Shown one piece after another: positions 22,784-44,394 of a stretch of DNA of 64,000 nt. Positions within the stretch are counted from its first letter, which is position 1; each line of letters starts with the position of its first letter. The position numbers and the translations under genes are program-made. The notes below the pieces were generated by a model, which made no database searches, was not told where the DNA came from, and saw only the letters and a program-made list of their open reading frames with translations. Source of the stretch: Auanema rhodensis (taxonomy: Eukaryota; Animalia; Nematoda); contig OZ059894.1 in the NCBI GenBank assembly GCA_964057225.1, positions 17,856,001 through 17,920,000 of the forward strand, written 5' to 3'.

Positions 22784-24556
22784 TTAATCGTGCTTTATGT
22801 TCTGATCGTCCAAAACCTAGAAAAAGAGAGAAGTGTTACATACAAATTTGTCATCATTCCCCTACCTCTTCTACGACTCTTCGTTTGATAAATTCTCGAG
22901 ATTCTGATTGGACGTACTCGTTCTTCAATGCAACCTGTCTCAGTACCCAATCAATTCTCAATTCATCCATGGAATTCCAGCCGGGATGACTTGTTTCTGT
23001 TTCCACAATCTCTGAAAAAAAAGTAATCATTTTGAGTGATTTATATAACAGCAAACCTAAAACAGCAGCTCTTATATCCTCTTTCCAAGCTTCTTCATCC
23101 TTTTTCGCTTCTTCATCAAACTGAGGAGCGCTATCGAAACAGACCACAATAGCTGTCATGTTATCTTTAGATCCTTTCCATAAGCAAGCATCCAGGACCT
23201 AAAATGGAAAGATTAACACACAGGAAGAAAAAAGAATACAATTACATCGTTACATACTGTTTCCAAGTTGTCACCATTTACATTAAGACGCGCACGAACA
23301 AATGAGCATAGTTCCTCATTTTCCATGACATCGTAGACGCCATCGCATGCCAAAACTAAGAATTCGTCGTTTTCCTGAATATTACATTGAAATCTCAATT
23401 TTTTACAGAAACATACCTTAGATCTAGACAAAACGTATACATCAGGTTCGGGGGAAACAAGCTGTTGAACAGCGCTAAGGTCTGGGCTTCCTTTATACTC
23501 GAAATCGCCGAATGCTCTGAAATTTTTTTGCAATGAAATAATAGGATTTCGAAATACCTAGACACAGCCAAACTTCCGTTTATTCTGTGAATCATAACAG
23601 AACCACCAGCCTTAATAATTCTTTCTCTCTCTTTGGTTAGGTTGGGCTGAAAAAAACCATAACTGAATTTCTTGATAAATAGATTTACCTTATGATCGTC
23701 AGTACCAAAAACTTCTCCTGACTTTCTTGAATAAACAGCACGGGAATCACCTAAAACTTTTATGACGACGAGTTAAAATCATTTCAACTAACCTAAGTTC
23801 GCGATGATAGTGTGAGTTGGAGTGATGATAGCACAAACAGCAGTAGTACCACTGCGATCTCTTTCCTAAATGCTTGAGATAACTTTGGTATAACTACTAA
23901 AGAGAAACCTTATCGAGTTCTTCTCTCATCTTTTCATCCATTTGTAAGAAACCTTCAACAATTCCCTCTTTCATCAGCTCAAGCAGTTCGTCAGTAAGTG
24001 TATTGTTATTTTCAAGCAGTTTTTCACTCAGCTGAAATTGCAATGATGTATAGAACATTTTTAATAAGCTACCTGCTGGAATTTTTCAGTGTTAATCAAA
24101 GTATCCATTATATAAGCAGATCCCAAATTTGCTGCAACATTACCGGCATGCCCGTCAAAAACAGCAAAGAAAGACCAGCCTTTGTAAGGTTCAACTTTTC
24201 CCATTGAATACTAAAAAAATTAAAATAATGAAATAATACAACAAATTAAAACCTCCAAAACGTGAGCATCTTCCATATCTACACGCCAACCTTGCATACT
24301 GCCGAGAGCGAACCGAAGACCCTAAGAAAAGAAAAAGTAAAAAAGCTTTTTTAGGTTAGTAAAATACATTTCCATCTCCAGAAGAATTGGTCTTCACTGT
24401 CCGAGGTTTGTCCAAGAATGCTCCCATGGTTGGATTATCGGTTATTTCTACAAGACCACAACGAGTTATACGCCAGGTACGAAGAACAGGACTAGTAGCC
24501 AAAGGAATCTGCGAGAGGGAATCAGAGTCAGATTTGTCATTGACTAAATAAGACAT
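22784..24556 (-). CDS. ppm-1: Protein phosphatase 2C, PPM1A/B type
   Basis: Motifs [88 protein letters not shown] and KGSKDNMT. A 43-aa N-terminal extension ([11 protein letters not shown]) resembles the long C. elegans PPM-1 form as I recall it. A TTTCAG acceptor lies just upstream of the ATG. Confidence 0.95.
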
Positions 24557-28616: not shown

Positions 28617-31600
28617 TTATTTACATAATGTTGTTTTCTGAGGGCTACGGAATGAGCCACGTGGAATACGAGATCTAAATACATTTATTATTAATATAAT
28701 TATATTTATTCATTATTTTACCTTTGAAGAGGACTAGATGGATAATGTATTGGACTACCAACATCAGGAGCTTTTGAAAAATCAAGCGAGAGAAGAGACA
28801 ATTCACTGCCAAATGAACGTAAATCTAGTGAAGACAAAGCGTTTTTGACCTGAAAATAGATTTCTGTTAAACAATGTTTCTCTTTTTCTTTCTCATACCT
28901 TGATTCGTTTCATCACCAAATCGTTGGATGAGCTGGCTCTCAGTATTGGAAACAGTGTTTTTGGTATATTTGTTAAGCAGACGGAAGTTTTTTGTTTTAA
29001 ACTAAATTAAACATAACCAATACAAAGTTACTTTACTATTCTTACCTTGCAAGCTGAATAACTTGGTTTTGGCAGATTATGAAATTTGTCTGAATCACGC
29101 CATTTCCAACGTTTTCAATTTCATGCTCCAATTCTTCAAATTCACTCAATTCTTCGTCTTCCTCTCTGAAATAGAAATAAATGAATAAAGGAAGTGTTAA
29201 CATGACTAACTCTACAAAGCTTTCGCTTATTTCCTCAGGACCTGCAGGTTTACTATTGTGAACTTCTTCAAGTTTTCTATGTATCTCTTCCATGTGATTA
29301 GTTACGAAAAGTGATGGTGTTGATGTACGAGCAGGTGAAATTGACAATTTACTGAAAATATAATATATTTTTCCTTCCCTAAGAATAAAATATGTATTAC
29401 CTCATATCTTTAACGTCTAAATCTTCTGAAGAACTACGACTGGCATATCCGCCATCTGAATCAGATGATCCACGAGTTTCTTTGCCGTATTTATTGGATC
29501 GGAAGGAGCATAGAGTTGAATAAAGTGTGCTTTCTAAATCATAACTTATACATACTTAATTAATCAATATTTACCGTATTTATTCTTTTTCTTCTTATCT
29601 GGAATTCGTTCAGGAGCATTTGGCATAATTGATGTTCTTGCATTGTAGATAATAGTAACTAAATCAGCTGCACTGAAGACATTAATTGGACTTTTTTCGA
29701 ATTTCGCCATCATTTTTCCGATTTCCCGATACATTGAGCAGTTTTCATTTAAAGTTATTCGTGTTGGCTTCAAGTCATTAAGATATTTAAGTCCAAGTAA
29801 TAGCTCATCGACATCAATTGTGGGGCAATTGAATCTATCTTTCATCATACTTGCAGTTTCTTTCCATGACGTTATATCTGACGGAGCAATCTTTGATGAC
29901 TCGTCGTTTTCAGCAAACATGAAATGTAGATAACTCAATCCTGAAGGGGCTGAGTTCATAAGAGTAGTCATCAATACCAATGAATGTATGGAGCAAGATG
30001 GAAGCGGTTTCGTCATACTTAATACGAACAATGCGACAAGATTAATGTTCGAAGCGTCAATCTCAGACATGAGTATGATTACTCCTAACGATGATAACTG
30101 CACTTTCTCAGCTTCTATTTTAGATTTGATGTGTAATGACCACGCTGAGCAATTAAGTTCTTGACATGACAGTTTGCTGGATCCAAGCATAAGCCATTTT
30201 GCATCCAAATCTAGTTTCATAACATTTTCGAATTTCCCACTGATTACGGCAGTTCGTGAACATCCAAAGCTGACCTGAATAGTTGTTTAGTCTTTTTCTT
30301 TAAAAATAATGCTCACGTTATTCATATTGCTGAAGTTAACAGATGAATGTACTGTGGATGAAAACAAAGAAAATGTGTCAGATTGAGAAGTTGAAGAATA
30401 ATTTCCGGATACTGTAGCAATTTCTCCATTGATAACACATTGGAAACAATCTTCAATGTCTGCATTCAAGTGTAACTCGCTACTTTCAATTGCTGTTCCA
30501 TTGATATTCTAAGAAAGCTTTCTATCTGCAAAACTGAACAAACATTTACCAACCTTGAACTTTCCATTTGTAACAGTTAGACTCTCTTTTGCAAAAATTT
30601 CCAGGAACTTCAAGCTTGCAACAAGTCCAGTCATTTTGACTTTAACTCCTTCAATACAAATTTCTGATTCGGGAGACGAGCCAACAATAGATCCAGAAAT
30701 GAAGACATCACTTCCCTAAATAATATAAAAATATTTTTGATTTGAAATATTCTAAACCTTAATAGCTGATATGAATAATTTCCCTTCTACCAATAAATTA
30801 CCATGTATGTATAATGCTGATGTTAAAATGGTAGTAGCATCAGCCTTAAAAAAGAATTAATATAGTTTATGATATGCTGGTCAAACCTCTCCCAAAGCTC
30901 TCAACCGGAATATCGCATCAGGCATTATTTCGATCGAAGAAGCAGTTATATCTCCTAGAGCTACAATCTGATGCAGATCAAAGGCAACATCAGATTTTTC
31001 TGCTTGGAACGTGTTAACCTATAATTCATTTGAAAATTAATGTTGAAAATAAAAAAATAACTGAACCTCTAGTTGATTTTTACATGCAACGATCACTTTT
31101 TCAAAGCCGGATGACACTGATAGTCGTCCACATCGTAAAGTACCGTCAAGGAAAATACGAAGTTCTTTTGCACTTCCGGTAATAACCAAATTGTTGACTA
31201 ATACATCAGCAGCTTCTCGAAGATGTAGCAATGCAATATCAGTTTGTGGCCCTCCAAGTAGTATTTCTAATCGGTCAATATCGATTGTAGAGTTGAGAGT
31301 AACAGAACGTTGAGCAGCACATCCAAGGGACAATTGACGGTTTTCATCAACAATCGATGTAGCTAATAGAAGATCGCTTCGAGCAGAAAAACTTATTCTT
31401 CCTCCACGTAGAAGTGACGATGCATCCTGGAACAATAAAATATAAGAAGATTCAGAAGGATATAAATCACCTTAACAGCCAATTCAAGTTTATGTGCGCA
31501 CAAGTCTAAGTTGGTTTTGGCTTTGATAGATCCTCCTAAACGAACCCAATCATTTGACGCAGATAACAGTTTCATCTTGTTCTTTGATTCCATGAACCCC

Positions 31601-34600
31601 TGAATGAAATATTTTATATTTTTTCTCAAATATCTAATATTACTTCATCATTATTGAAATTTTTCAGACGAATATCCATATTTTCCGAAGCAAAGATTCT
31701 TCCTAGATTTTCTAGTGTACCTTCACCCATAACATATAGATAATCACAAGCTAATGTTCCTTTGTTTAACAATAATTCTTCGATTACTATTTGGAGAGAT
31801 TTCACATGGTTTTGTTTATTTTCCGAGGTTGTTAATCGACCTTTTTGAATCCAACTATTAGCTAATAGATGAACTTCCTCAGCTTGAAAGCGAATTTGAC
31901 CCTCGTGATACCATGTTTCTGCGCATATTATTCCTTCCATCTGTGGATTCTTAGCCAAAGAAACTATGGTTGAACCCTTTAGAGTTGTCAATGATCCACA
32001 TGCAATCAGTGTGTTGAATTCAATATCTGGATTTGGACTAGTAATTCCAATTAATCTTAAGATAGCGTCTTCAGATATTTGAATGGATGAAAAAGGAGCA
32101 ATGATAGCTGTAGCAGACAGACGACCAGATAAGATGAATGCAGGAAACGAATGTCTTTTGCGTGGGGTGGAAGGCAGGAAACAACTGAAAGTCCACAATT
32201 CAAAATATACTGATGAATGGTTTCAAAAACCTGTTTCCTTTTATGGTCAGTGGACTGCTCAAGATATCCCATTGACCCGTAGCATGCAGTTGTGATTCTC
32301 CAGAATAAGGAACAGTAACTTCAGCTTCATTAGCTCTCAAGAATCCATCAAAACGACAAGCTTTTAAGCATCTGAATATATTAAATTGATATAAACTATA
32401 AGATAATGTATTCACCGTAATAGAAAATGGCTACATACGATTCTTCCGTCCCAATTACACGATGAATCAGAATGAAGAACTAAATCAAAGCTTTGCTTTA
32501 CAAAAATTGTGGCATCAGAAGTTTGTTCAATTTTTCCAATAGTAAACATGCCATTCTTTTCAACCTTTAAATATAAAATATAATTAAAATCTTATATTTA
32601 GATATCTTACCTGCCAAAATGCTTGATTCAAGAAATATCCAGCAGTAACAGTAGCTTTACTGAATGTTGCAGATTTTCCTCCTTCTAATGTAATTAAATC
32701 TTTTCGAACATAAATCTATAAAAAAACAATTTAAATAATTTTCTATGAATATTATAATCTTTACATTCATTTGATCAACAACCCATATACCAGCTAATGT
32801 ACAATTTCCTTCACATGTTAATGTGTAATTTCTGCATTCCAGCTTTGAAGAAGGATAAAAATCTATTTTATCTTTAACTTGAATATGACAATCTTCAGAC
32901 GAATTCAAAAATCCATAGCTTTTCATACTGAAAATTATTTTATTTCTTCTTTATTTGATTATGTTTCTTACATATTAGCTTCAATACTTGTGTTTTCTTC
33001 TACAAGTATCTTTCCACTTTCGCCAAGTTCGAACGTATTGGCAGCTTTCAACCATAGAGATCCGATTTGCCATGAACCTTTGTGTGACACATTGCCTTCA
33101 GATGCAATTTCCATCTAAATACAAGTTTTACAAATGTTTTTTGTTTCATCTCATAACAACCTTTTCCGATTCAATGTATGAATTTGAATAAAATGAAATA
33201 CTTCTTGAAGCATCAACAGCGAATGTTTCACCAACTGACCATATGCCATCACAATCAAAACTAAAAATAGTAAAATCATTATTCATTTCTAATGAAATCA
33301 TGTACTTGTTTAGTTAAATCAAATTCTAACCTTTTACTTGTAATTCTAGCGAAAATTTCATGATTGATGATAGCACTTTCAGTAACTCTTATAGTTCCTT
33401 CACTGTTAATGATAAATGTTTTGTGTTTAACTTGGCCTAGAATTAAATATTTTAAAAATAAAATCATGTTACATCAAAAAAGAAAAGAAAAAAGATTCAC
33501 GTGCTCACATACCTGCGATTGTAACATCATTACCAACTTCTAATTCAACCCATGAACAATTCCAAATAGAATCTTTTTCAACTGTAGCACTACTACCAAT
33601 CTATATATAATATAATTTATTTTAATATTATTTATATTTAAATTTACTTTCATTTGTAATTCTTTTGATGATAATTGTGCACAATCATCACATCTTTTTC
33701 CAATTACAGCTAAAATAGCTTCTGAAGAAATGATTCCACGTCTAGACAAATAGAAAATCTTTTTTAATTTTAATATATTAATTACTAACTTCCAATCATG
33801 TACTGTAAATAAAGCATTTATCAATGTTATATTTGCCCTTTTCTGATTAAGCATTGATTCTTCCTTCTTTTCTCGATATTTCCTTATAGCTTCTTGTCTC
33901 AGAGTTAAACTAGTCTTTTTGATCTTTAAATATATAAAATTTATTATTTTATATTGAAGTTATAACTTACATTATGAACTTTATCATTGAGATCCACACC
34001 ATTTTCTATGAGATGTGCTGCAGCATCAGCATTTTGTGATGTAATAGCATTCTGCAGTGATGCGGTAGATGGAAGACATGATGTCTTTGAACGTATTCCT
34101 CGAATTTCTTTCAAAGCATCATATCCTATAGTAAAATATTTTATTTTAATATAAATATTTTGTATATATTACCCCTTCCTGCACTATCTATAGATCCATC
34201 CATCAATGATAGTAAACTTTCACCAATTTTCAGCTCTGTTCTATTTGTGGATATGATACGACCATAGTTTGCTAATGATCCCGAAATTTGGAGTGATAAT
34301 GTATCAGCAACTATCTGCGCTATTTTCTAAATTTAATGAACATTTTTTTTCGAATCAAAAAATGAAATCAAAGGACATACCGAAACATTCAAAGATAAAG
34401 TTTTTTTATTTGATTTATTCTTTTCTTTTTCATTTGATTCTCCGATACATCCATCAACGCCAAGATGTAGTAAGCTTGAATTCACAACAACGCAGAGATG
34501 TCTCGGTTCTTGTGATGTTTCATGTGGATATATACGGCCATCTAATTGCATTTTACGAGATATTACCTAAAACAATTAGTTCATCTTAGTTATTTATCAA

Positions 34601-35613
34601 ATATTAATATACTTACTCGTAGTTTTGATGTGCTTAATAAAGATTCGGTTGCAACGACAATATTCTGAGCCAAAAGAATGAGTCGTGTACTCAAAATTCG
34701 AGCATTAATGTGCATTGTACCGATAGTTGATTCAAAAGTAACACTTTGAGCTTTGATATTGCCTACAATATCAAGATTGGGTCCACCAATCGCAATCTAA
34801 ATTTATAAAATCTGATGTTAAGCTATATAATATCTCTTACTTCTCGAATTTGTGTGTTCATATCTTTTACAGTAGTTTTAAGCTCATTATCATGAGGACT
34901 TAAAGAAGAGTATATAACTATTTCTGGCTTCTTCTCATGCTATAAACCATTTTTTATTAATTTTGTTTCAAATAGACGTATCATCTCATACCATATGTTG
35001 TAATGAAATTTTGTATTGTTGTTGTAAACGTTGAATTGAAATAACATAGCCACCTGGAACTTCCGCATTGATAGCCGGCCAATTCACTGATGTATCCTTA
35101 GGGATAATAGCCTATAATTTGTATTCTTTCAGCCAATTACTATTCTTAGAAGAAAAGAAATGAAAAAACTTTTTTTTTGTATAGATTTTCAGATTGAACT
35201 ATATCAATCAACTCTCATTCATGATTAATGAATGTTAAGAAAGACAAAGAGGCAATATATTCTATTTCAATTGTTCATTATTCAATAGTAAAACTGAAGT
35301 TTTTCAATTATTATTCATAAAAAAAATTATATATTCATATTGTATATCTATTAATCTATAATACTTTAGATACTGTAAAATATGATTATGATAATATTAT
35401 TTTTATTTTTTTTACCTGAATAATAATAAAAAAATTTATAATATTATAGTAAAACATATAGATTTTATAGAAAAATAAATGAAAATTTGAATATATACGT
35501 ATGTATATACAACTTACATGAATATTTCTTCCCGTTTCATCAATTTTCAAACGAGGTTTTGATCCTCTTTCAATTCGTATACAGACTTTTTCATCTGACA
35601 TGTTCCATGACAT
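28617..35613 (-). CDS. Large (~1,700 aa, ~31 exons) beta-solenoid protein with filamentous-haemagglutinin-like repeats, one ankyrin-like repeat and a disordered C-terminus
   Basis: Continuous in-frame exon chain from tttag|ATG (35613) to ...SRIPRGSFRSPQKTTLCK* (28617). Recurring beta-strand/turn motifs: LANYGRII, LLNKGTL, LENLGRIFA, WYHEGQI, WIQKGRL, SHKGSWQI, FDCDGIW. Ankyrin-like segment SLQNAITSQNADAAAHLIENGVDLN. No signal peptide. Confidence 0.85.
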
Positions 35614-38600
35614 CTAAACGAGAATAACATTTAAAAATAATAAATTTTTAAAAGTTCTTTCTTGTATCCTCTAAAGGAAAAAAGAAAGTTTTTTTCTTAG
35701 ATAATTCTTAAAAATTGTTAATTTAAAAAGAACACAATTACAAACGAGATTTTAGTGTGTTATTCGATAAAAGTTCAAAGAAATTTAGGAATACTTGTTC
35801 AAGGTCATATAGCTCATTTAGAATTAAAGAAAGAGAAGCTTGTTAATTTAATTATTCAATAATTTAACACTGATTATCTAATTCCAAATGTTTTATACAG
35901 AATTATTTATAGTTACTATAGTAAAATGATAAAAAAGTTAAAGGAATACTATACATTTTCAAAATCACGGGGCTTATTACAGATTCAATTGATCATGATG
36001 ACATACATAGTAGGATCTATTCGGCGAAAAAAATTTAAATATGAACAATAACTAAATTGAATTTTAATATTAAAATGTTAAAATGTAGAAATAGTATATA
36101 GCTGATGAACACATAATTGTAAAATTTTGCTTTTCTCTCTGCAATATGTCCGAAAAAATTGTTTAACATCAAGACACGTTCACGGTCATATTGTCCTTTA
36201 GGGAGTTTTGCAAAAAAATGACTAAAAGGCGTAATGAACATAATGCCCCACATACTATATGTTAATAATATTAAAATAATATATTAATAATTATAATATT
36301 ATTATTGATTATTAGAAATATAAATATCTTGATTAGAAAAATTATGATACTCATCATCATCATCATCATCATCATATGTCAAGCTATTTCAATAATTGTG
36401 TAATTTAAAAGAAAGTTTATGAGGAAAGTGAGATAAGAAAAGCATACTTGTGCCTTGTACGAAGAAGATAAGCTTAAAAGTTCATCAATCTTAGACTTTT
36501 TAAATGTTCTCATGTGGTCAAAATAAGATAAACTGACCAAAGTGATAATAGGAAAAAAGTTTAACGCGCTCTGTATAGGGGCTTTGCAGTGATGTATGGT
36601 GGTTGACGGACAGGTTATAAAAACTTTTCTTTTTTATTTTTTTGGGAAAAAAAAGAGAAAAGGGGGAAGTTTAATGGTCACTACCGCGAAAACTATAATT
36701 TTTAATTTAAAAGGATCATATATTATGTGTTAAATTCACGATTGACAAAAGAAATAAAATGGTATAAAATCGACGTTAATTGTGAAAACCAGAAATCTCA
36801 CCTCTTCTTTATCGCCAAATTATGAAAAGAAGAAATAGTCACAATTTTTTTTTTCAATTAAAAATGTAAATTGAATAAGTACAAGGATAACTTAACTGAA
36901 AATGTATGAAGGAAAGATGTTTAACAAGAAAATTAGGAAAGCGCAAAAAGATGTTCTTTCTTGATAATTTTTTACTGAACCTACTATAACCTTGAGAAAA
37001 ATAATATTGACACTATGCCATTGAATAAGTAGATTATATGGAGAAAAAACATTTACTCTTAGTATATATTTCAACATTTTCATTAATATATATGCATATA
37101 GATATAGCTTTCAAATACAAATCTAAGAAGATGATATGAACTCGGGTGTATGATGTTGCTAAATTTTCAAATGTTTTCTCAAAATATTACAATTTTACAA
37201 GGAAATAGTATCAACAAAATATTTGTTTAATAAGAATTATATAGAAATTATTATAATATATATAGAACTAATAGAATGTTTCTATTTTAAAATTAAAATT
37301 AACCACTTAATACATCGTAATCTGCTTCAAAACTGTAAAAAGGTAAGACGACTACATGAGATTAGATGAGAAAACTTTTGCGCACGACCCCAAAAACAAG
37401 AAGGTTCTGAGACGAAGTGATTGAAATAGAAGGACGATCACCAAAATTTACGGTTATAGAGGAGGTAAATTGCTTCTAGAACAAACCCTATATTCTCTTA
37501 ACAGAAAGAGATTTCATTCCAAAACAAAGAATAGATATGAATGGAAGAAAGAAAGAAATTTGAAACAAAACTTGAAATAATAACTTATGTTATTCGATAA
37601 AACAAATTTAGAATATAGTAGATGCTAAAGATATCCATAGAATGCTGTAGTTAAACAACGTTTAACAAATAGAAATAAGAACACTTGTAAGATTTAAATT
37701 TCAGGTTTAACCCAAGAAAAGAGTGATCAGTTTTCTTTCAAAATGTTTATGCGATAGAATACACCACATTACGTTTTGTAAACTTTAGGTATATCAAGTA
37801 TTGAAAATAGAAATGATATAGATAGCTTTACTAGAAAACTTTAAAAACCTCAAATTTTAAAAAGTGAACTTAGAAAACGGTGAAATACTATACATAATTG
37901 GCTTTTCAGCTGTGAGAAGAAGAAGTAACACCACTCCCATAAAGAAAATGGCGCCAAATTCAAAGTTCGCTACTTTGAATCGCATGTTCAGAAATATAAA
38001 ATAAAATAGCAGCAGAGCAGGTGGAGAATTGTTGGGAATGTTAGTGATTATGCAAACCTTACAGGAAAGGAGAAATTGATAAAAACGAGAGAAACAGTTG
38101 AAAATCATGGTAACTATGATGTATATATTAGAGAGAAAGAGAGGTAGATAGATAAATAGAGAGAGATAGAAATGCAAAGTAGTTTTTGTCATTTTTAGTT
38201 ATTGAAATACGAACATCAAAAGTATGGAAAGAAAAGATTATTTAAGGCAAACATGATGATCTAATCTTTAATTATATCTAATATAATTAGTAAAACGATA
38301 ATAAAATGCTGAATACATTCTTGTATTCTTAATAGTTCTATTCAAACACATTTGTTCTTATTATTAGTCATCATTTCTAATTGTTTATTCAATATGTCAA
38401 TTCGAATTATAATGTATTGTATTTGTTGTTTTAAGTAAAAAAAAAGATAAGTTCGATACGTATAATTGAGAGAAAAACGCCTAAAGGACAAAAAAAAGAT
38501 GAAATTTGATTGAAAGAACAGACATATGTATATCTTTGAATAAGCAGTTGATGATTACGAAGACAATGATGCCTTGTGTTGTTGGCCTACGAAGAGCAAA

Positions 38601-42505: not shown

Positions 42506-43249
42506 TTAAGCAACGAGATGCATTGGACACATGAGTTTCTGAAAAAATAAAAGAATTAGTAAATTAGAAAAATGAAGTTTCATTTTTTATTTTGAAAAAA
42601 ACAAATTCTTTTCTGAGATTCTTTGTTAACTGTTTCAGCAAAAATGTATTCGCTGAATCAAGTCATTGGAATACAGAATTTGTAATTCGGTTTGATTTAG
42701 TATGTCGATTGAAAACAGTTTTCCATAGATATCGTCGCCAAAAAAGTCAGTATGATATGCAACTTCAGGTATCAGTTCGACGAATCACATGACACAATGA
42801 TTTCAACTTCATATTGATTCATGATGATACTTTGACTCATGATAAATGAAAATGAACAAACCTTAGCTTGAGATACATATTCAGATCCGTGATATGATTT
42901 TTGGTATTCTGGAACAACTCCAACAGCATATTTTTCCATAGCCAAGCGAGCTTTAACGGAATGTCCTACGCTTTCGAATGCATCAGTGGCATCAGAACCA
43001 GCCTAGAATTGTTGAAGTACAAAAAAATTCAAAGTAAAGTTTCGATTTGTTGTTTGAATATTGATGTGTGCTTTCAAAAAATTCCGGAAGCTGTTCTAAA
43101 CTTACATATTCGAGTAGGATTTCCATTCCACCCTGATGTTCCATGAGGAACTCAGTAATATCATAAACAATATTGCGGATAATAATCCAACAATCGTCTG
43201 GAGAATCATGAGAAGCAACTTCACATCTTTCAAAAGTATCGGTAAGCAT
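42506..43249 (-). CDS. Cytochrome b5 heme-binding protein, ~105 aa, no C-terminal TM anchor
   Basis: Exons 43249-43106, 43002-42862 and 42538-42506: EVASHDSPDDCWIIIRNIVYDITEFLMEHQGGMEILLEYAGSDATDAFESVGHSVKARLAMEKYAVG. Both axial His are present. A tttcag acceptor lies 2 nt before the ATG. Confidence 0.92.
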
Positions 43250-44394
43250 GCCTGAAAAAAGATTTTGATCAATAATCAGCTTGTCTTCATAAAGCATAAA
43301 TGAGAAGACGATGAAAAGGAATTTGCCAGAATTATGGAGTAAATGAAGACGATAGGGTGCGGCGTGGAATGATACATAACTAGGAATTCGATAAAAAAAT
43401 TATCGAATGATTGAAATCGTTTAAAGTTTCTTTTCGAGAAACAGGTGCGGATGCTTGTTCGCCTTGACAGTAACAGAAGCCCATGCTTGTTGTGTACTAA
43501 ACGTAGACATCGCCATAATACAGCTGATGCTGTACAAAAACGCGAAAAGAATTACCCATGTAGAAAGAACACAACTATATTCTGCTTTGTCACATGAGAC
43601 AAAAAGCTGAAATGACCAGCTGATCATTATGCTAGAGAGGTGGGTTTGACATCGAGTCAGTTTAGGACCAAAAGCCGGAAATGGGTTGTATGAAGTCAAG
43701 TGATAGCAAACGATAACGTTTCTTTAATAGTCGAAAGGTTATTGTGCTAACTGGAATTGTGCAAACAAAACATCGTTAAAAATCATCTTTTCACTGATGT
43801 TATTGCTTAAGCGGCTACTTTTCCAGACTTCCATTGTGGTTGGTGTGCCACCGTTCCGAGCCCACGAGAACCAGCTATTCAAAAATGCAGAAAGGCAGGG
43901 TTTTGCCCAATGCAAGTTGAAACGTCGTGCAACCTCTGGTAAAAAGAATGCTAGGAATTCATTAAATATATTAAAAATTAAAATTATTTGATTTCACAAA
44001 ATATATTGTTTCTTCTTTAGTTGTAATCACTCATTCAAATATCAATATCACAACTTTTAAGTTTTTTGATTTGACTTCCAAGTTTGAAATTAGGAACAAC
44101 TTGCCTATTAAACTTCAATTCCATTCTTTTATCCATATTTTGATTTTTTGAAAATGAGGAAAATATACCTCATACGGTAAATCTCTTTTGAAATTTAGAT
44201 GAGCATTAAGAAAAAAGACATACGATGGGTAGGAAAGGAAATTTAAATAAGAAATGAAGTTCATTAACTAATGAAGATGAAGATTATGTTTTCTGTTTCA
44301 CCAGAAGACAATTGATTCGGGGAGATTGTGTGTACGAGATGGGTGGTAACACGAGGGAAGGGCACGTTGCTGGTCCTTCAATCGCAAAGAATTC

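Follow-up and report, generated by a model that had tools for sequence, protein, structure and literature searches.

A long right-handed beta-helix predicted for an intron-rich nematode gene whose product lacks a signal peptide

Can a nematode gene encode the shaft of a bacterial surface fibre, and if it encodes something of that shape, where did the shape come from and what does it do in the worm? The question arises in a window of 64,000 nucleotides of Auanema rhodensis (contig OZ059894.1), in which an earlier note, made from the letters alone, described a giant gene for a beta-helix like those of filamentous haemagglutinin (FHA) and CdiA. A long right-handed beta-helix made by one chain is the hallmark of adhesins that bacteria secrete, of autotransporters and of phage fibres.

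The gene lies on the minus strand (window 35613-28617) and consists of 31 exons separated by 30 GT-AG introns, with a coding sequence of 5,199 nt for 1,732 amino acids. Its ATG at 35613, which sits directly after a TTTAG acceptor-like site, and its stop codon at 28617-28619 fall exactly where the earlier note had put them, and the estimate of about 30 short introns fits equally well: the median length is 47 nt, and intron 1 (406 nt, 35517-35112) is the sole long one. The final model is homology-guided and combines tblastn with the orthologue from Auanema sp. JU1783 (P0001), whose residues 1 to 1723 are colinear with the locus, with transcript joints and Auanema exon lengths; it corrects two ab initio models in which the ANK exon was missing and four introns were merged or mis-set. 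Spliced transcript contigs of up to 5,547 nt, from four runs of one study, confirm at least 15 junctions with CT..AC ends on the plus strand, in the part of the gene beyond exons 1-5 and the 406-nt intron 1 (34450-35700). Next to it in the window lie one gene for a cytochrome b5-like protein and one for a PP2C, and the parts of the gene and its product are placed in Table 1. The bacterial-looking fold is the sole point for taking the locus as bacterial contamination, a pseudogene or chance open frames, a reading already refuted by the colinear tblastn alignment, the transcript contigs and the shared introns; the GT-AG introns, 30 in all, are spliced out in transcript contigs, base composition matches that of the surrounding DNA, and full-length orthologues share both intron positions and synteny.

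Table 1. Parts of the gene and of its predicted product, by window position
Feature	Window position	Strand	Evidence
Whole coding span	28617..35613	minus	Homology-guided model, tblastn vs P0001, transcript contigs
3'UTR	below 28617, to at least 28450	minus	
Exon 1, aa 1-32	35518..35613	minus	73% identity to P0001 residues 1-33; equal 96-nt exon in JU1783
Beta-helix part 1 and N-terminal cap strands, aa 9-263	34219..35589	minus	AF2 model m20a2cd2b8cd5, all-beta, pLDDT 85-96 except one loop
Beta-helix part 1, exons 1-6	35613-35518, 35111-34992, 34939-34841, 34796-34617, 34566-34381, 34326-34173	minus	
Invariant I-[AG]-G-P-N-L-D-x-x-G motif, in beta-helix part 1	34790-34761	minus	Invariant alignment columns
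Conserved helical insert, about 105 aa, aa 270-375, interrupting the beta-helix	33741..34200	minus	Five AF2 helices, pLDDT <50; many invariant residues
Helical insert, exons 6-9	end of 34326-34173, 34125-33971, 33923-33790, first base of 33741-33648	minus	
Single ankyrin-like helix pair, aa 297-326, exon 7	34072-33983	minus	
Beta-helix part 2, about 1,015 residues, aa 378-1393	29912..33734	minus	AF2 pLDDT mostly 90-98; VIA-align; Atlas clusters
Beta-helix part 2, exons 9-17	33741-33648, 33600-33513, 33436-33331, 33260-33161, 33114-32972, 32927-32765, 32715-32611, 32564-32416, 32371-32231	minus	
Beta-helix part 2, exons 18-25	32184-31644, 31599-31471, 31426-31067, 31018-30887, 30844-30758, 30715-30554, 30508-30317, 30274-29575	minus	
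Small C-terminal helical domain, aa 1403-1483, inside 700-nt exon 25	29642..29884	minus	AF2 helices, model residues 550-630, pLDDT about 75-89
Ser/acid-rich tail, predicted disordered, aa 1484-1732	28620..29641	minus	pLDDT <50; invariant columns; junctions in transcript contigs
Tail, exons 25-31	end of 30274-29575, 29533-29401, 29351-29211, 29165-29046, 29001-28899, 28849-28722, 28674-28617	minus	
Tail invariant block D-x-G-Y-x-S-R-S-S-S-E	29456-29418	minus	P0001 columns D1529-E1539
Tail invariant block SSNDLVMKR...LDLRSFGSE...SLDF	28964-28635	minus	P0001 columns D1660-L1686 invariant

Comparative analysis places the locus in a nematode family. P0001 is the closest orthologue, at 66.5% identity with 7 gap columns, and 21 others at 30-48% identity span clades III, IV and V of Rhabditida. 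Orthologues of 1,600-1,780 aa occur in Auanema, Strongylida, Caenorhabditis, Mesorhabditis, Steinernema, ascarids, Gnathostoma, Syphacia and filariae, and the family includes CBG05635, Bm2194 and NECAME_06902. The earlier note had named orthologues across animals or eukaryotes in a characterised family as what would speak against its proposal; those found are all nematode and all uncharacterised. This restriction to nematodes reflects one phmmer search with the C-terminal 240 aa together with word-limited searches. Two weak matches of the large search proved spurious, one low-complexity (P0011) and the other a fish Ig-repeat protein (P0013). Word searches had C. briggsae and C. remanei among the matches listed, C. 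elegans not; an orthologue in C. elegans is likely to exist, since the Elegans-group species C. briggsae, C. remanei and C. tropicalis each have one.

Gene structure agrees with this descent. In JU1783 the order cyt-b5 / gene / PP2C is conserved, the 31 exons correspond one to one and in order with lengths equal in all but three, and 28 of the 29 introns in a 29-intron version of the model are held in common; five positions are common to Brugia malayi and two to all four species compared. The gene tree fits the accepted clades, with no duplicates among its rows, and the locus is a single-copy, transcribed and spliced nematode gene that has passed down vertically since, at the latest, the common ancestor of Rhabditida clades III-V. 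Mean column identity is 47%, with invariant positions dense in aa 100-440, aa 630-930 and the tail. Such conservation lies above the need of a passive spacer and would fit an enzyme or a multi-partner hub too.

Structure prediction gives the protein its shape. AF2, run in two halves on P0001 rather than on the window protein and with a family alignment of only 22 sequences, returned a right-handed parallel beta-helix of about 1,270 residues whose coils, by strand spacing, take about 20 residues, with a pLDDT of 85 for the N half and a value over 90 for the beta portion of the C half. This prediction of a long right-handed beta-helix for the core is one of high confidence and lies close to the beta-solenoid of about 1,300 residues proposed earlier, and the AlphaFold run that the earlier note had put forward as a check thus ended in a beta-helix with core pLDDT above 90. 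At about 60 coils of about 20 residues each, the predicted rod would be roughly 30 nm long, and a helical insert interrupts it about one fifth along. It is the structure prediction, not sequence repeats, that confirms the solenoid. All four turn strings quoted in the earlier note are present (LANYGRI at aa 245, LLNKGTL at aa 876, LENLGRI at aa 895, WYHEGQI at aa 829), but a repeat motif in the strict form [LIVMFW]xNxGx[LIVMFW] occurs only 3 times, against 0.6 expected from shuffles, and hydrophobicity has no periodicity along the protein sequence, so that the motif evidence by itself is thin.

The remaining parts largely follow the first reading. An ankyrin-like helix pair, put by the earlier note at about 33970-34065, does fall within the helical insert; the protein has at most one ankyrin repeat, in a low-confidence part of the model. 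The family profile weakly matched a designed ANK protein in the PDB (E 0.013, positions 294-334), and Pfam Ank, Ank_3 and Ank_5 (PF00023, PF12796 and PF13606 tested) gave weak matches at E 0.09-0.22 in one of 18 members. UniProt labels several orthologues ANK_REP_REGION. The helical domain and disordered tail that had been read from the sequence reappear in the AF2 model (Table 1); for the former, the PDB profile search found no match and Atlas features gave nothing usable. The protein has no signal peptide, as had been noted, and no transmembrane segment: its N-terminus, MSWNMSDEKVCIRIERGSKPRLK, reaches a maximum Kyte-Doolittle value of 0.16 (10-residue window, first 40 aa), and orthologues with the consensus start are alike in this. 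Only gene models that appear to begin too early or too late (Dictyocaulus, C. briggsae) have a hydrophobic N-terminus.

Structural comparison leads to the two-partner-secretion (TPS) exoproteins. By VIA-align the best match is EtpA (8vba; Z 28.1, rmsd 2.5 Å over 374 aligned residues), with HMW1 (2odl; Z 24.1 and 21.4, rmsd 2.6 and 2.3 Å), the EtpA TPS domain (8cpk; Z 23.3) and 1rwr (Z 16.4) also found. In the Atlas fold search the top four clusters for the N half all carry Fil_haemagg or TPS, as do the top cluster and several more for the C half, with TM up to 0.60/0.69, and also 0.52/0.60, to clusters with Fil_haemagg. Language-model (ESM) features agree, 28 of the 30 nearest clusters carrying Fil_haemagg (scores 0.90-0.93), and one single exon reached 0.86 to such clusters by Atlas features, a lead only. 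Foldseek against the PDB, another check named in the earlier note, came back without a significant match for either half (best EtpA, E 0.32), so that the fold was resolved only by full alignment of structures with VIA-align and by shape search in the Atlas. With EtpA, HMW1 and the Fil_haemagg Atlas clusters as best matches, the description "FHA/CdiA-like beta-helix" is supported as a statement about fold, and the models support TPS exoproteins, not generic beta-helices, as the nearest structural neighbours.

TPS (type Vb) exoproteins such as EtpA, HMW1, FHA/FhaB, CdiA and HxuA share with the predicted rod a long right-handed parallel beta-helix that is little elaborated and has about 20 residues per coil. 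Unlike them, the nematode protein is encoded by a eukaryotic gene with 30 spliceosomal introns, is without signal peptide, TPS domain, NPNGI/NPNL motifs, Fil_haemagg repeats by HMM, detectable sequence periodicity or a toxin/adhesin tip domain, and has additions of its own in the ANK-like helical insert, the helical domain at the C-terminal end and the tail predicted to be disordered. A gene for a TpsB partner (Omp85-type) is not expected in an animal nuclear genome. Autotransporter passengers and phage tailspikes (pertactin, Hbp, EspP, Ag43, Pam1, CBA120 TSPs) have the generic right-handed beta-helix (Z 13-22) but differ in their higher rmsd (3-5 Å), in their larger looped coils, in being secreted or part of a virion, and in having no sequence relation to the nematode protein.

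Beta-helices that work inside cells offer a different comparison. Bactofilins are cytoplasmic beta-helical structural proteins, and Atlas Bactofilin rows align to the N-terminal part (TM 0.68 over 186 residues); however, their domain of about 110 aa polymerises end to end, whereas the nematode rod is one chain whose ends appear capped by N-terminal strands and the C-terminal helical domain. In animal cells, intracellular PbH1/CASH proteins (FBXO11/DRE-1, SHCBP1/Nessun dorma) use a right-handed beta-helix as a binding platform, joined to F-box or other domains. Those helices are short, at about 10-20 coils, and the Pfam Beta_helix and SMART PbH1 models detect them; the predicted nematode rod is three to six times longer. 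Pfam Beta_helix (PF13229) had no match in 18 members, Syphacia P0038 included. UniProt names the Syphacia (P0038) and Brugia timori (P0058) entries "Beta_helix domain-containing".

Homology to FHA/CdiA and horizontal acquisition, the stronger claims of the earlier note, found no backing in sequence comparison. Among 18 members, neither the TPS domain PF05860 (E up to 10) nor any Pfam or NCBIfam family matched, PF05594 Fil_haemagg, PF13332 Fil_haemagg_2 and TIGR01731 included; single-exon queries gave nothing by Pfam, PDB sequence search or word search; the family profile found no TPS protein among PDB sequences; and the family's peptide patterns found no relative in one genome each of 185,579 bacterial and archaeal species. 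With hhalign, the N-terminal 270 columns reached a probability of 1.0% against 105 bacterial TPS domains (reversed control 0.3%), and forward probabilities against 28 bacterial shafts were at most 0.9%, under the 2.0% of a reversed control, whereas a bacterial positive control gave 94%; the TPS comparison set was mostly cyanobacterial. The IAGPNLDV motif was considered as a relic of the TPS NPNGI turn and rejected, hhalign not aligning the two. Membership of the TPS family is not supported by these comparisons, there being no signal peptide, TPS domain or Fil_haemagg repeat and hhalign values of at most 2%, about those of reversed controls, and the same observations leave horizontal transfer unproven. 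As for the phylogeny and distribution from which the earlier note hoped to read a transfer, relatives were found in nematodes only, in limited searches; the gene tree follows the species tree, and no bacterial relative appeared in the genome scan.

A rod taken from a bacterial TPS exoprotein (FHA/CdiA/HMW1-like) before Rhabditida diversified and then domesticated inside the cell is a reading we consider unlikely while giving it some weight. TPS proteins are nearest in both halves, at rmsd 2.1-2.6 Å over about 250-370 residues and ahead of tailspikes, lyases and autotransporters; the Atlas and ESM neighbours point the same way, the coils are of FHA length, and no relative was found beyond nematodes in the limited searches. 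However, a minimal triangular beta-helix can arise by convergence, similarity of embeddings can mirror fold class alone, and the searches just described count against a bacterial source, though with a mostly cyanobacterial TPS comparison set. On this reading the rod would have lost its signal peptide, TPS motifs and repeat signature, and its gene would have gained introns. Any transfer would predate Rhabditida, since the family was inherited vertically across that group. A bolder and still more speculative version would have an early nematode take up an FHA/TPS-type bacterial surface fibre, which then lost its secretion signals and is now kept by all Rhabditida as an essential-looking cytosolic germline scaffold.

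For function, the reading preferred here, at slightly better than even odds (about 55%), takes gene and predicted fold as described and sees the beta-helix rod as a rigid intracellular spacer or scaffold, the intracellular scaffold role being a best guess. The rod would set a fixed distance inside the cell, and partners may be recruited by the insert, by the densely invariant N-terminal third and by tail motifs that are probably phosphorylated. In C. briggsae, the mRNA of the orthologue CBG05635 is among the strongest GLD-1-associated germline messages (PMC4316625), an association that points to a function in the germline or the early embryo. Against the proposed role stands the result of paired RNAi, in which the C. 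briggsae gene gave no visible phenotype (PMC4316625).

Two other roles were weighed against the scaffold. The beta-helix might be the body of an enzyme of the pectate/alginate lyase, GH28 hydrolase or C5-epimerase type that acts on an intracellular polymer, with invariant acidic, basic and His residues of the N-terminal third, flanked by the insert, forming an active-site groove. Invariant polar residues are unusually dense there (P0001 E127, E156, R169, D174, H199, D203, D267, D271, R275, H369, R373 and D391), and the structural matches include AlgG, PL6 lyases, AlgE4 and polygalacturonases (Z 15-17), yet such enzymes score clearly below TPS adhesins and at higher rmsd, no enzyme family was matched by sequence, 60 coils far exceed what any catalytic beta-helix needs, and a cytosolic substrate is not evident, all of which makes this role quite improbable. 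A very unlikely alternative is an adhesin-like fibre that reaches the surface or extracellular space by non-classical export, for example in eggshell, cuticle or sperm structures, and mirrors bacterial FHA-type rods. The fold class is almost exclusive to secreted adhesins and tail fibres, and a part in the eggshell or in gametes would agree with the germline mRNA association; against this, consensus-start orthologues have no signal peptide or transmembrane segment, cysteines are few (2.1%), and proteins that stay inside the cell are the typical bearers of an ANK-like repeat and of a Ser/acidic tail with kinase-site-like motifs.

Nothing relevant turned up in the literature on beta-helix, FHA, nematode and HGT, and accession searches gave only the GLD-1 paper (PMC4316625). 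A predicted 30-nm, signal-peptide-free rod of this kind, whose sequence keeps 30-66% identity among nematodes both free-living and parasitic (hookworms, Haemonchus, Ascaris and Brugia among them), has not been described before, and Pfam lacks a family for it. The rod would establish a new family of eukaryotic proteins, nematode-restricted as far as present searches reach, and offers a clean test case for horizontal transfer versus a convergent origin of a beta-solenoid. If true, a captured TPS fibre would be a rare instance in which the shaft of a bacterial adhesin became a structural protein inside animal cells. The likely C. elegans orthologue would allow a direct test of function.

Open frames on the minus strand form a chain across the gene in this AT-rich window (GC content 22-35%). 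The gene model starts from two ab initio predictions, followed by tblastn with orthologues, the joints of spliced transcript contigs and the exon lengths of the Auanema sp. JU1783 orthologue. One correction, at 33790, lets a loose end run straight into the next exon, and the final model keeps the start and stop proposed in the earlier note. The introns are missing from transcript contigs (up to 5,547 nt long) in four runs of a single study, where at least 15 junctions show CT..AC ends on the plus strand, so the gene is transcribed and spliced; the contigs extend through 28450 in the 3'UTR, and exons 1-5 were modelled from homology alone. A TTTAG acceptor-like site before the start codon suggests SL trans-splicing. 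All four runs also contain second contigs that match the gene only down to two internal points and continue for about 150-255 letters with no match in the 64-kb window at up to two mismatches; alternative transcripts, chimeric ones or a related locus elsewhere could account for them.

Features of the gene, its surroundings and the orthologous loci compared (L121, Auanema sp. JU1783; L122, C. briggsae; L123, Brugia malayi)
Feature	Position	Strand	Details
Gene	28617-35613	minus	31 exons, 30 introns (all GT-AG, median 47 nt); CDS 5,199 nt, protein 1,732 aa
Start ATG	35613	minus	
Stop	28617-28619	minus	
Intron 1	35112-35517	minus	406 nt, about 9 times the median of the other 29 introns
Helical insert	34200-33741	minus	aa 270-375; rich in invariant residues
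Ankyrin-like consensus helix pair	34072-33983	minus	one, inside the insert
Exon used for phmmer	29567-30286	minus	240 aa
End of match to second contigs	29532 and 33444		
ATG/ATT-type simple repeat	36271-36403		upstream of gene; short, low-complexity; Met run (minus), Ile run (plus)
Two flanking genes	22854-23533 and 42992-43297	minus	one cytochrome b5-like, one PP2C; same strand as gene
Flanking genes, JU1783	L121:3112-3689 and L121:18200-19973		
Orthologue, JU1783	L121:8001-14996		30 introns, 28 exactly in common with window
Orthologue, C. briggsae	L122:6001-12151		11 introns, 4 exactly in common
Orthologue, B. malayi	L123:1001-13026		15 introns, 5 exactly in common; one 3,130-nt exon
Giant neighbour, C. 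briggsae	L122:13648-18151		>3,051 aa; Thyroglobulin_1, Kunitz, Lustrin domains

The predicted structure comes from P0001, the JU1783 orthologue and closest relative, folded in two parts that overlap, each with a family alignment of 22 sequences. For residues 1-880 the mean pLDDT is 85.2 (581 residues at 90 or above), and the model there is all-beta apart from 267-372. Residues 851-1729 average 72.6 and comprise a beta part (model residues 120-540, mostly above 90), helices (550-630) and a tail below 50. Long strands recur about every 20 residues (starting, for example, at 375, 395, 415, 434, 455, 474, 496 and 515), which over about 1,270 helix residues implies some 60 coils; at the usual beta-helix rise of 4.8 Å per coil, the rod would measure about 30 nm.

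Foldseek returned no significant match for either half. Full structural alignment against 48,161 PDB representatives matched the N half to EtpA (8vba; Z 28.1, rmsd 2.5 Å over 374 aligned residues), the HMW1 secretion domain (2odl; Z 24.1, 2.6 Å over 249) and the EtpA secretion domain (8cpk; Z 23.3, 2.1 Å over 241), followed by phage tail proteins and tailspikes, pertactin and lyases (Z ≤22, 3.2-5.4 Å). The C half matched HMW1 (2odl; Z 21.4, 2.3 Å over 251), the curli subunit CsgA (8c50; Z 18.5, 9.9 Å over 308) and the EtpA secretion domain (8cpk; Z 18.4, 2.8 Å over 253), with the remaining matches below Z 18 at 3.0 Å or more. Fil_haemagg/TPS clusters rank first for both halves in an ESM-Atlas shape search (top TM values 0.60/0.69 over 612 residues and 0.52/0.60 over 533), and a language-model feature search with residues 375-880 finds Fil_haemagg in 28 of the 30 nearest clusters (scores 0.90-0.93). 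The predicted fold is thus a right-handed beta-helix whose geometry is closest to two-partner-secretion (TPS) exoproteins. As a fold, the FHA-like beta-helix proposed in the earlier note holds in this model, and the outcome that the note named as refuting it, a predicted structure other than a beta-helix, did not occur. All four strings it quoted occur in the protein, the strict L-x-N-x-G-x-I pattern appears three times where shuffled sequences lead one to expect 0.6, and no periodicity is detectable in the protein sequence.

None of the sequence features that define the FHA/CdiA family was found, so the resemblance is structural only. The protein has no signal peptide; none of 18 family members matches Pfam TPS, Fil_haemagg or Beta_helix at E up to 10; NCBIfam holds nothing relevant; and family profiles run against PDB sequences find no TPS chain. 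Alignments of the TPS domain (105 sequences) and shaft (28 sequences) were built from at least 120 bacterial loci with the TPS motif NPNGIIFG. When hhalign compared these with three portions of the nematode alignment, the probabilities (0.2-1.0%) did not rise above those of reversed-sequence controls (0.1-2.0%); the positive control, bacterial shaft against TPS domain, reached 94%. No relative turned up in a pattern scan that covered 185,579 species of bacteria and archaea, one genome each. An invariant N-terminal motif, IAGPNLDV, was considered as a relic of NPNGI and is unsupported by hhalign. Among the 80 loci listed, out of the 120 with the exact motif, most belong to cyanobacteria (Nostoc, Calothrix, Scytonema and others); cyanobacteria seem very rich in TPS-domain proteins, which may reflect ordering among the matches listed.

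Single exons matched no Pfam family or PDB sequence, and word searches with them found no protein of similar length. A phmmer search with one 240-aa exon against 1.84 billion cluster representatives gave 13 matches at E ≤0.001: eight nematode proteins (seven of 1,420-1,756 aa), three unnamed fragments and two spurious hits, a low-complexity protein and a fish Ig-repeat protein. Word searches with the best match and the family alignment raised the total to about 30 orthologues, from Auanema sp. JU1783, Strongylida (Necator, Ancylostoma, Haemonchus, Nippostrongylus and others), Caenorhabditis (C. briggsae CBG05635, C. remanei, C. nigoni, C. angaria, C. bovis, C. auriculariae, C. tropicalis), Mesorhabditis, Steinernema, ascarids (Ascaris, Parascaris, Toxocara), Gnathostoma, Syphacia, and spirurids and filariae (Thelazia, Brugia malayi Bm2194, Wuchereria). 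No relative outside nematodes came up in this one C-terminal phmmer search or in the word-limited searches. Every source names the orthologues hypothetical, unnamed or uncharacterised, with automatic labels on some ("ANK_REP_REGION", "Beta_helix" and, in C. tropicalis, "Protein kinase" domain-containing). Models from Caenorhabditis sp. 36 (P0031) and C. bovis (P0034) reach 2,142-2,149 aa; in the latter, 19 residues near position 1954 are strongly hydrophobic (KD 3.11), and this model is probably fused with a downstream membrane-protein gene model.

Identity to the JU1783 protein is 66.5% with only seven gap columns, and 30-48% to other orthologues. In a quick maximum-likelihood tree, clade III, Steinernema (clade IV) and clade V are recovered; Strongylida, Caenorhabditis, Auanema and Mesorhabditis each form a group, and the window protein is sister to Auanema (support 100%). 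One sequence per species and a species-like tree show vertical inheritance since at least the Rhabditida ancestor. In both Auanema genomes the gene has a cytochrome-b5 gene on its upstream side and one for a PP2C phosphatase on its downstream side, and their equal order and orientation mark a conserved micro-synteny block; the window thus probably stems from a rhabditid near JU1783 yet distinct from it. After two model corrections, all 31 exons match Auanema one to one and in order, all but three at equal length. In the intron comparison tabulated above, for which an earlier 30-exon model represented the window, only two positions are common to all four species; the shared positions agree with long residence in nematode genomes. 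Intron number differs greatly by lineage for this one protein, so introns were either gained heavily on the way to Auanema or lost repeatedly in the other lineages. The giant C. briggsae neighbour looks like mlt-11 and could help to find the C. elegans orthologue through synteny.

Horizontal transfer with later complete erosion of the sequence is one account of the TPS-like geometry, though an unlikely one; that a minimal beta-helix arose independently is no less likely. In the ankyrin-like insert noted earlier, one helix pair has an ankyrin-like consensus; the model there is of low confidence, and PDB profile searches give only weak ankyrin matches (positions 291-340, best E 0.013). Such low confidence is to be expected where folding takes place on a partner. 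Invariant polar residues lie mostly in the N-terminal third and around aa 630-930, and the tail holds invariant blocks, D-x-G-Y-x-S-R-S-S-S-E and, C-terminally, SSNDLVMKR...LDLRSFGSE...SLDF, that look like phosphorylated docking motifs.

The only literature trace found for the family lists C. briggsae CBG05635 among the top GLD-1-associated germline mRNAs, with no visible phenotype after paired RNAi (PMC4316625); no descriptive paper was found. The best reading, with moderate confidence, is that in the germline or embryo the protein would act inside the cell as a rigid scaffold or spacer. Lyases among the lower-ranked structural matches bring to mind a rival, an enzyme with a beta-helix body. 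Elsewhere, long beta-helices typify the secreted fibres of bacteria and those of phages, and a second rival is a fibre that, lacking a signal peptide, would be exported by a non-classical route. The family is already in sequence databases, but without a name or a Pfam model. As a scaffold or spacer or otherwise, a predicted beta-helix of about 60 coils without a signal peptide, conserved across Rhabditida, would be an unusual use of this fold.
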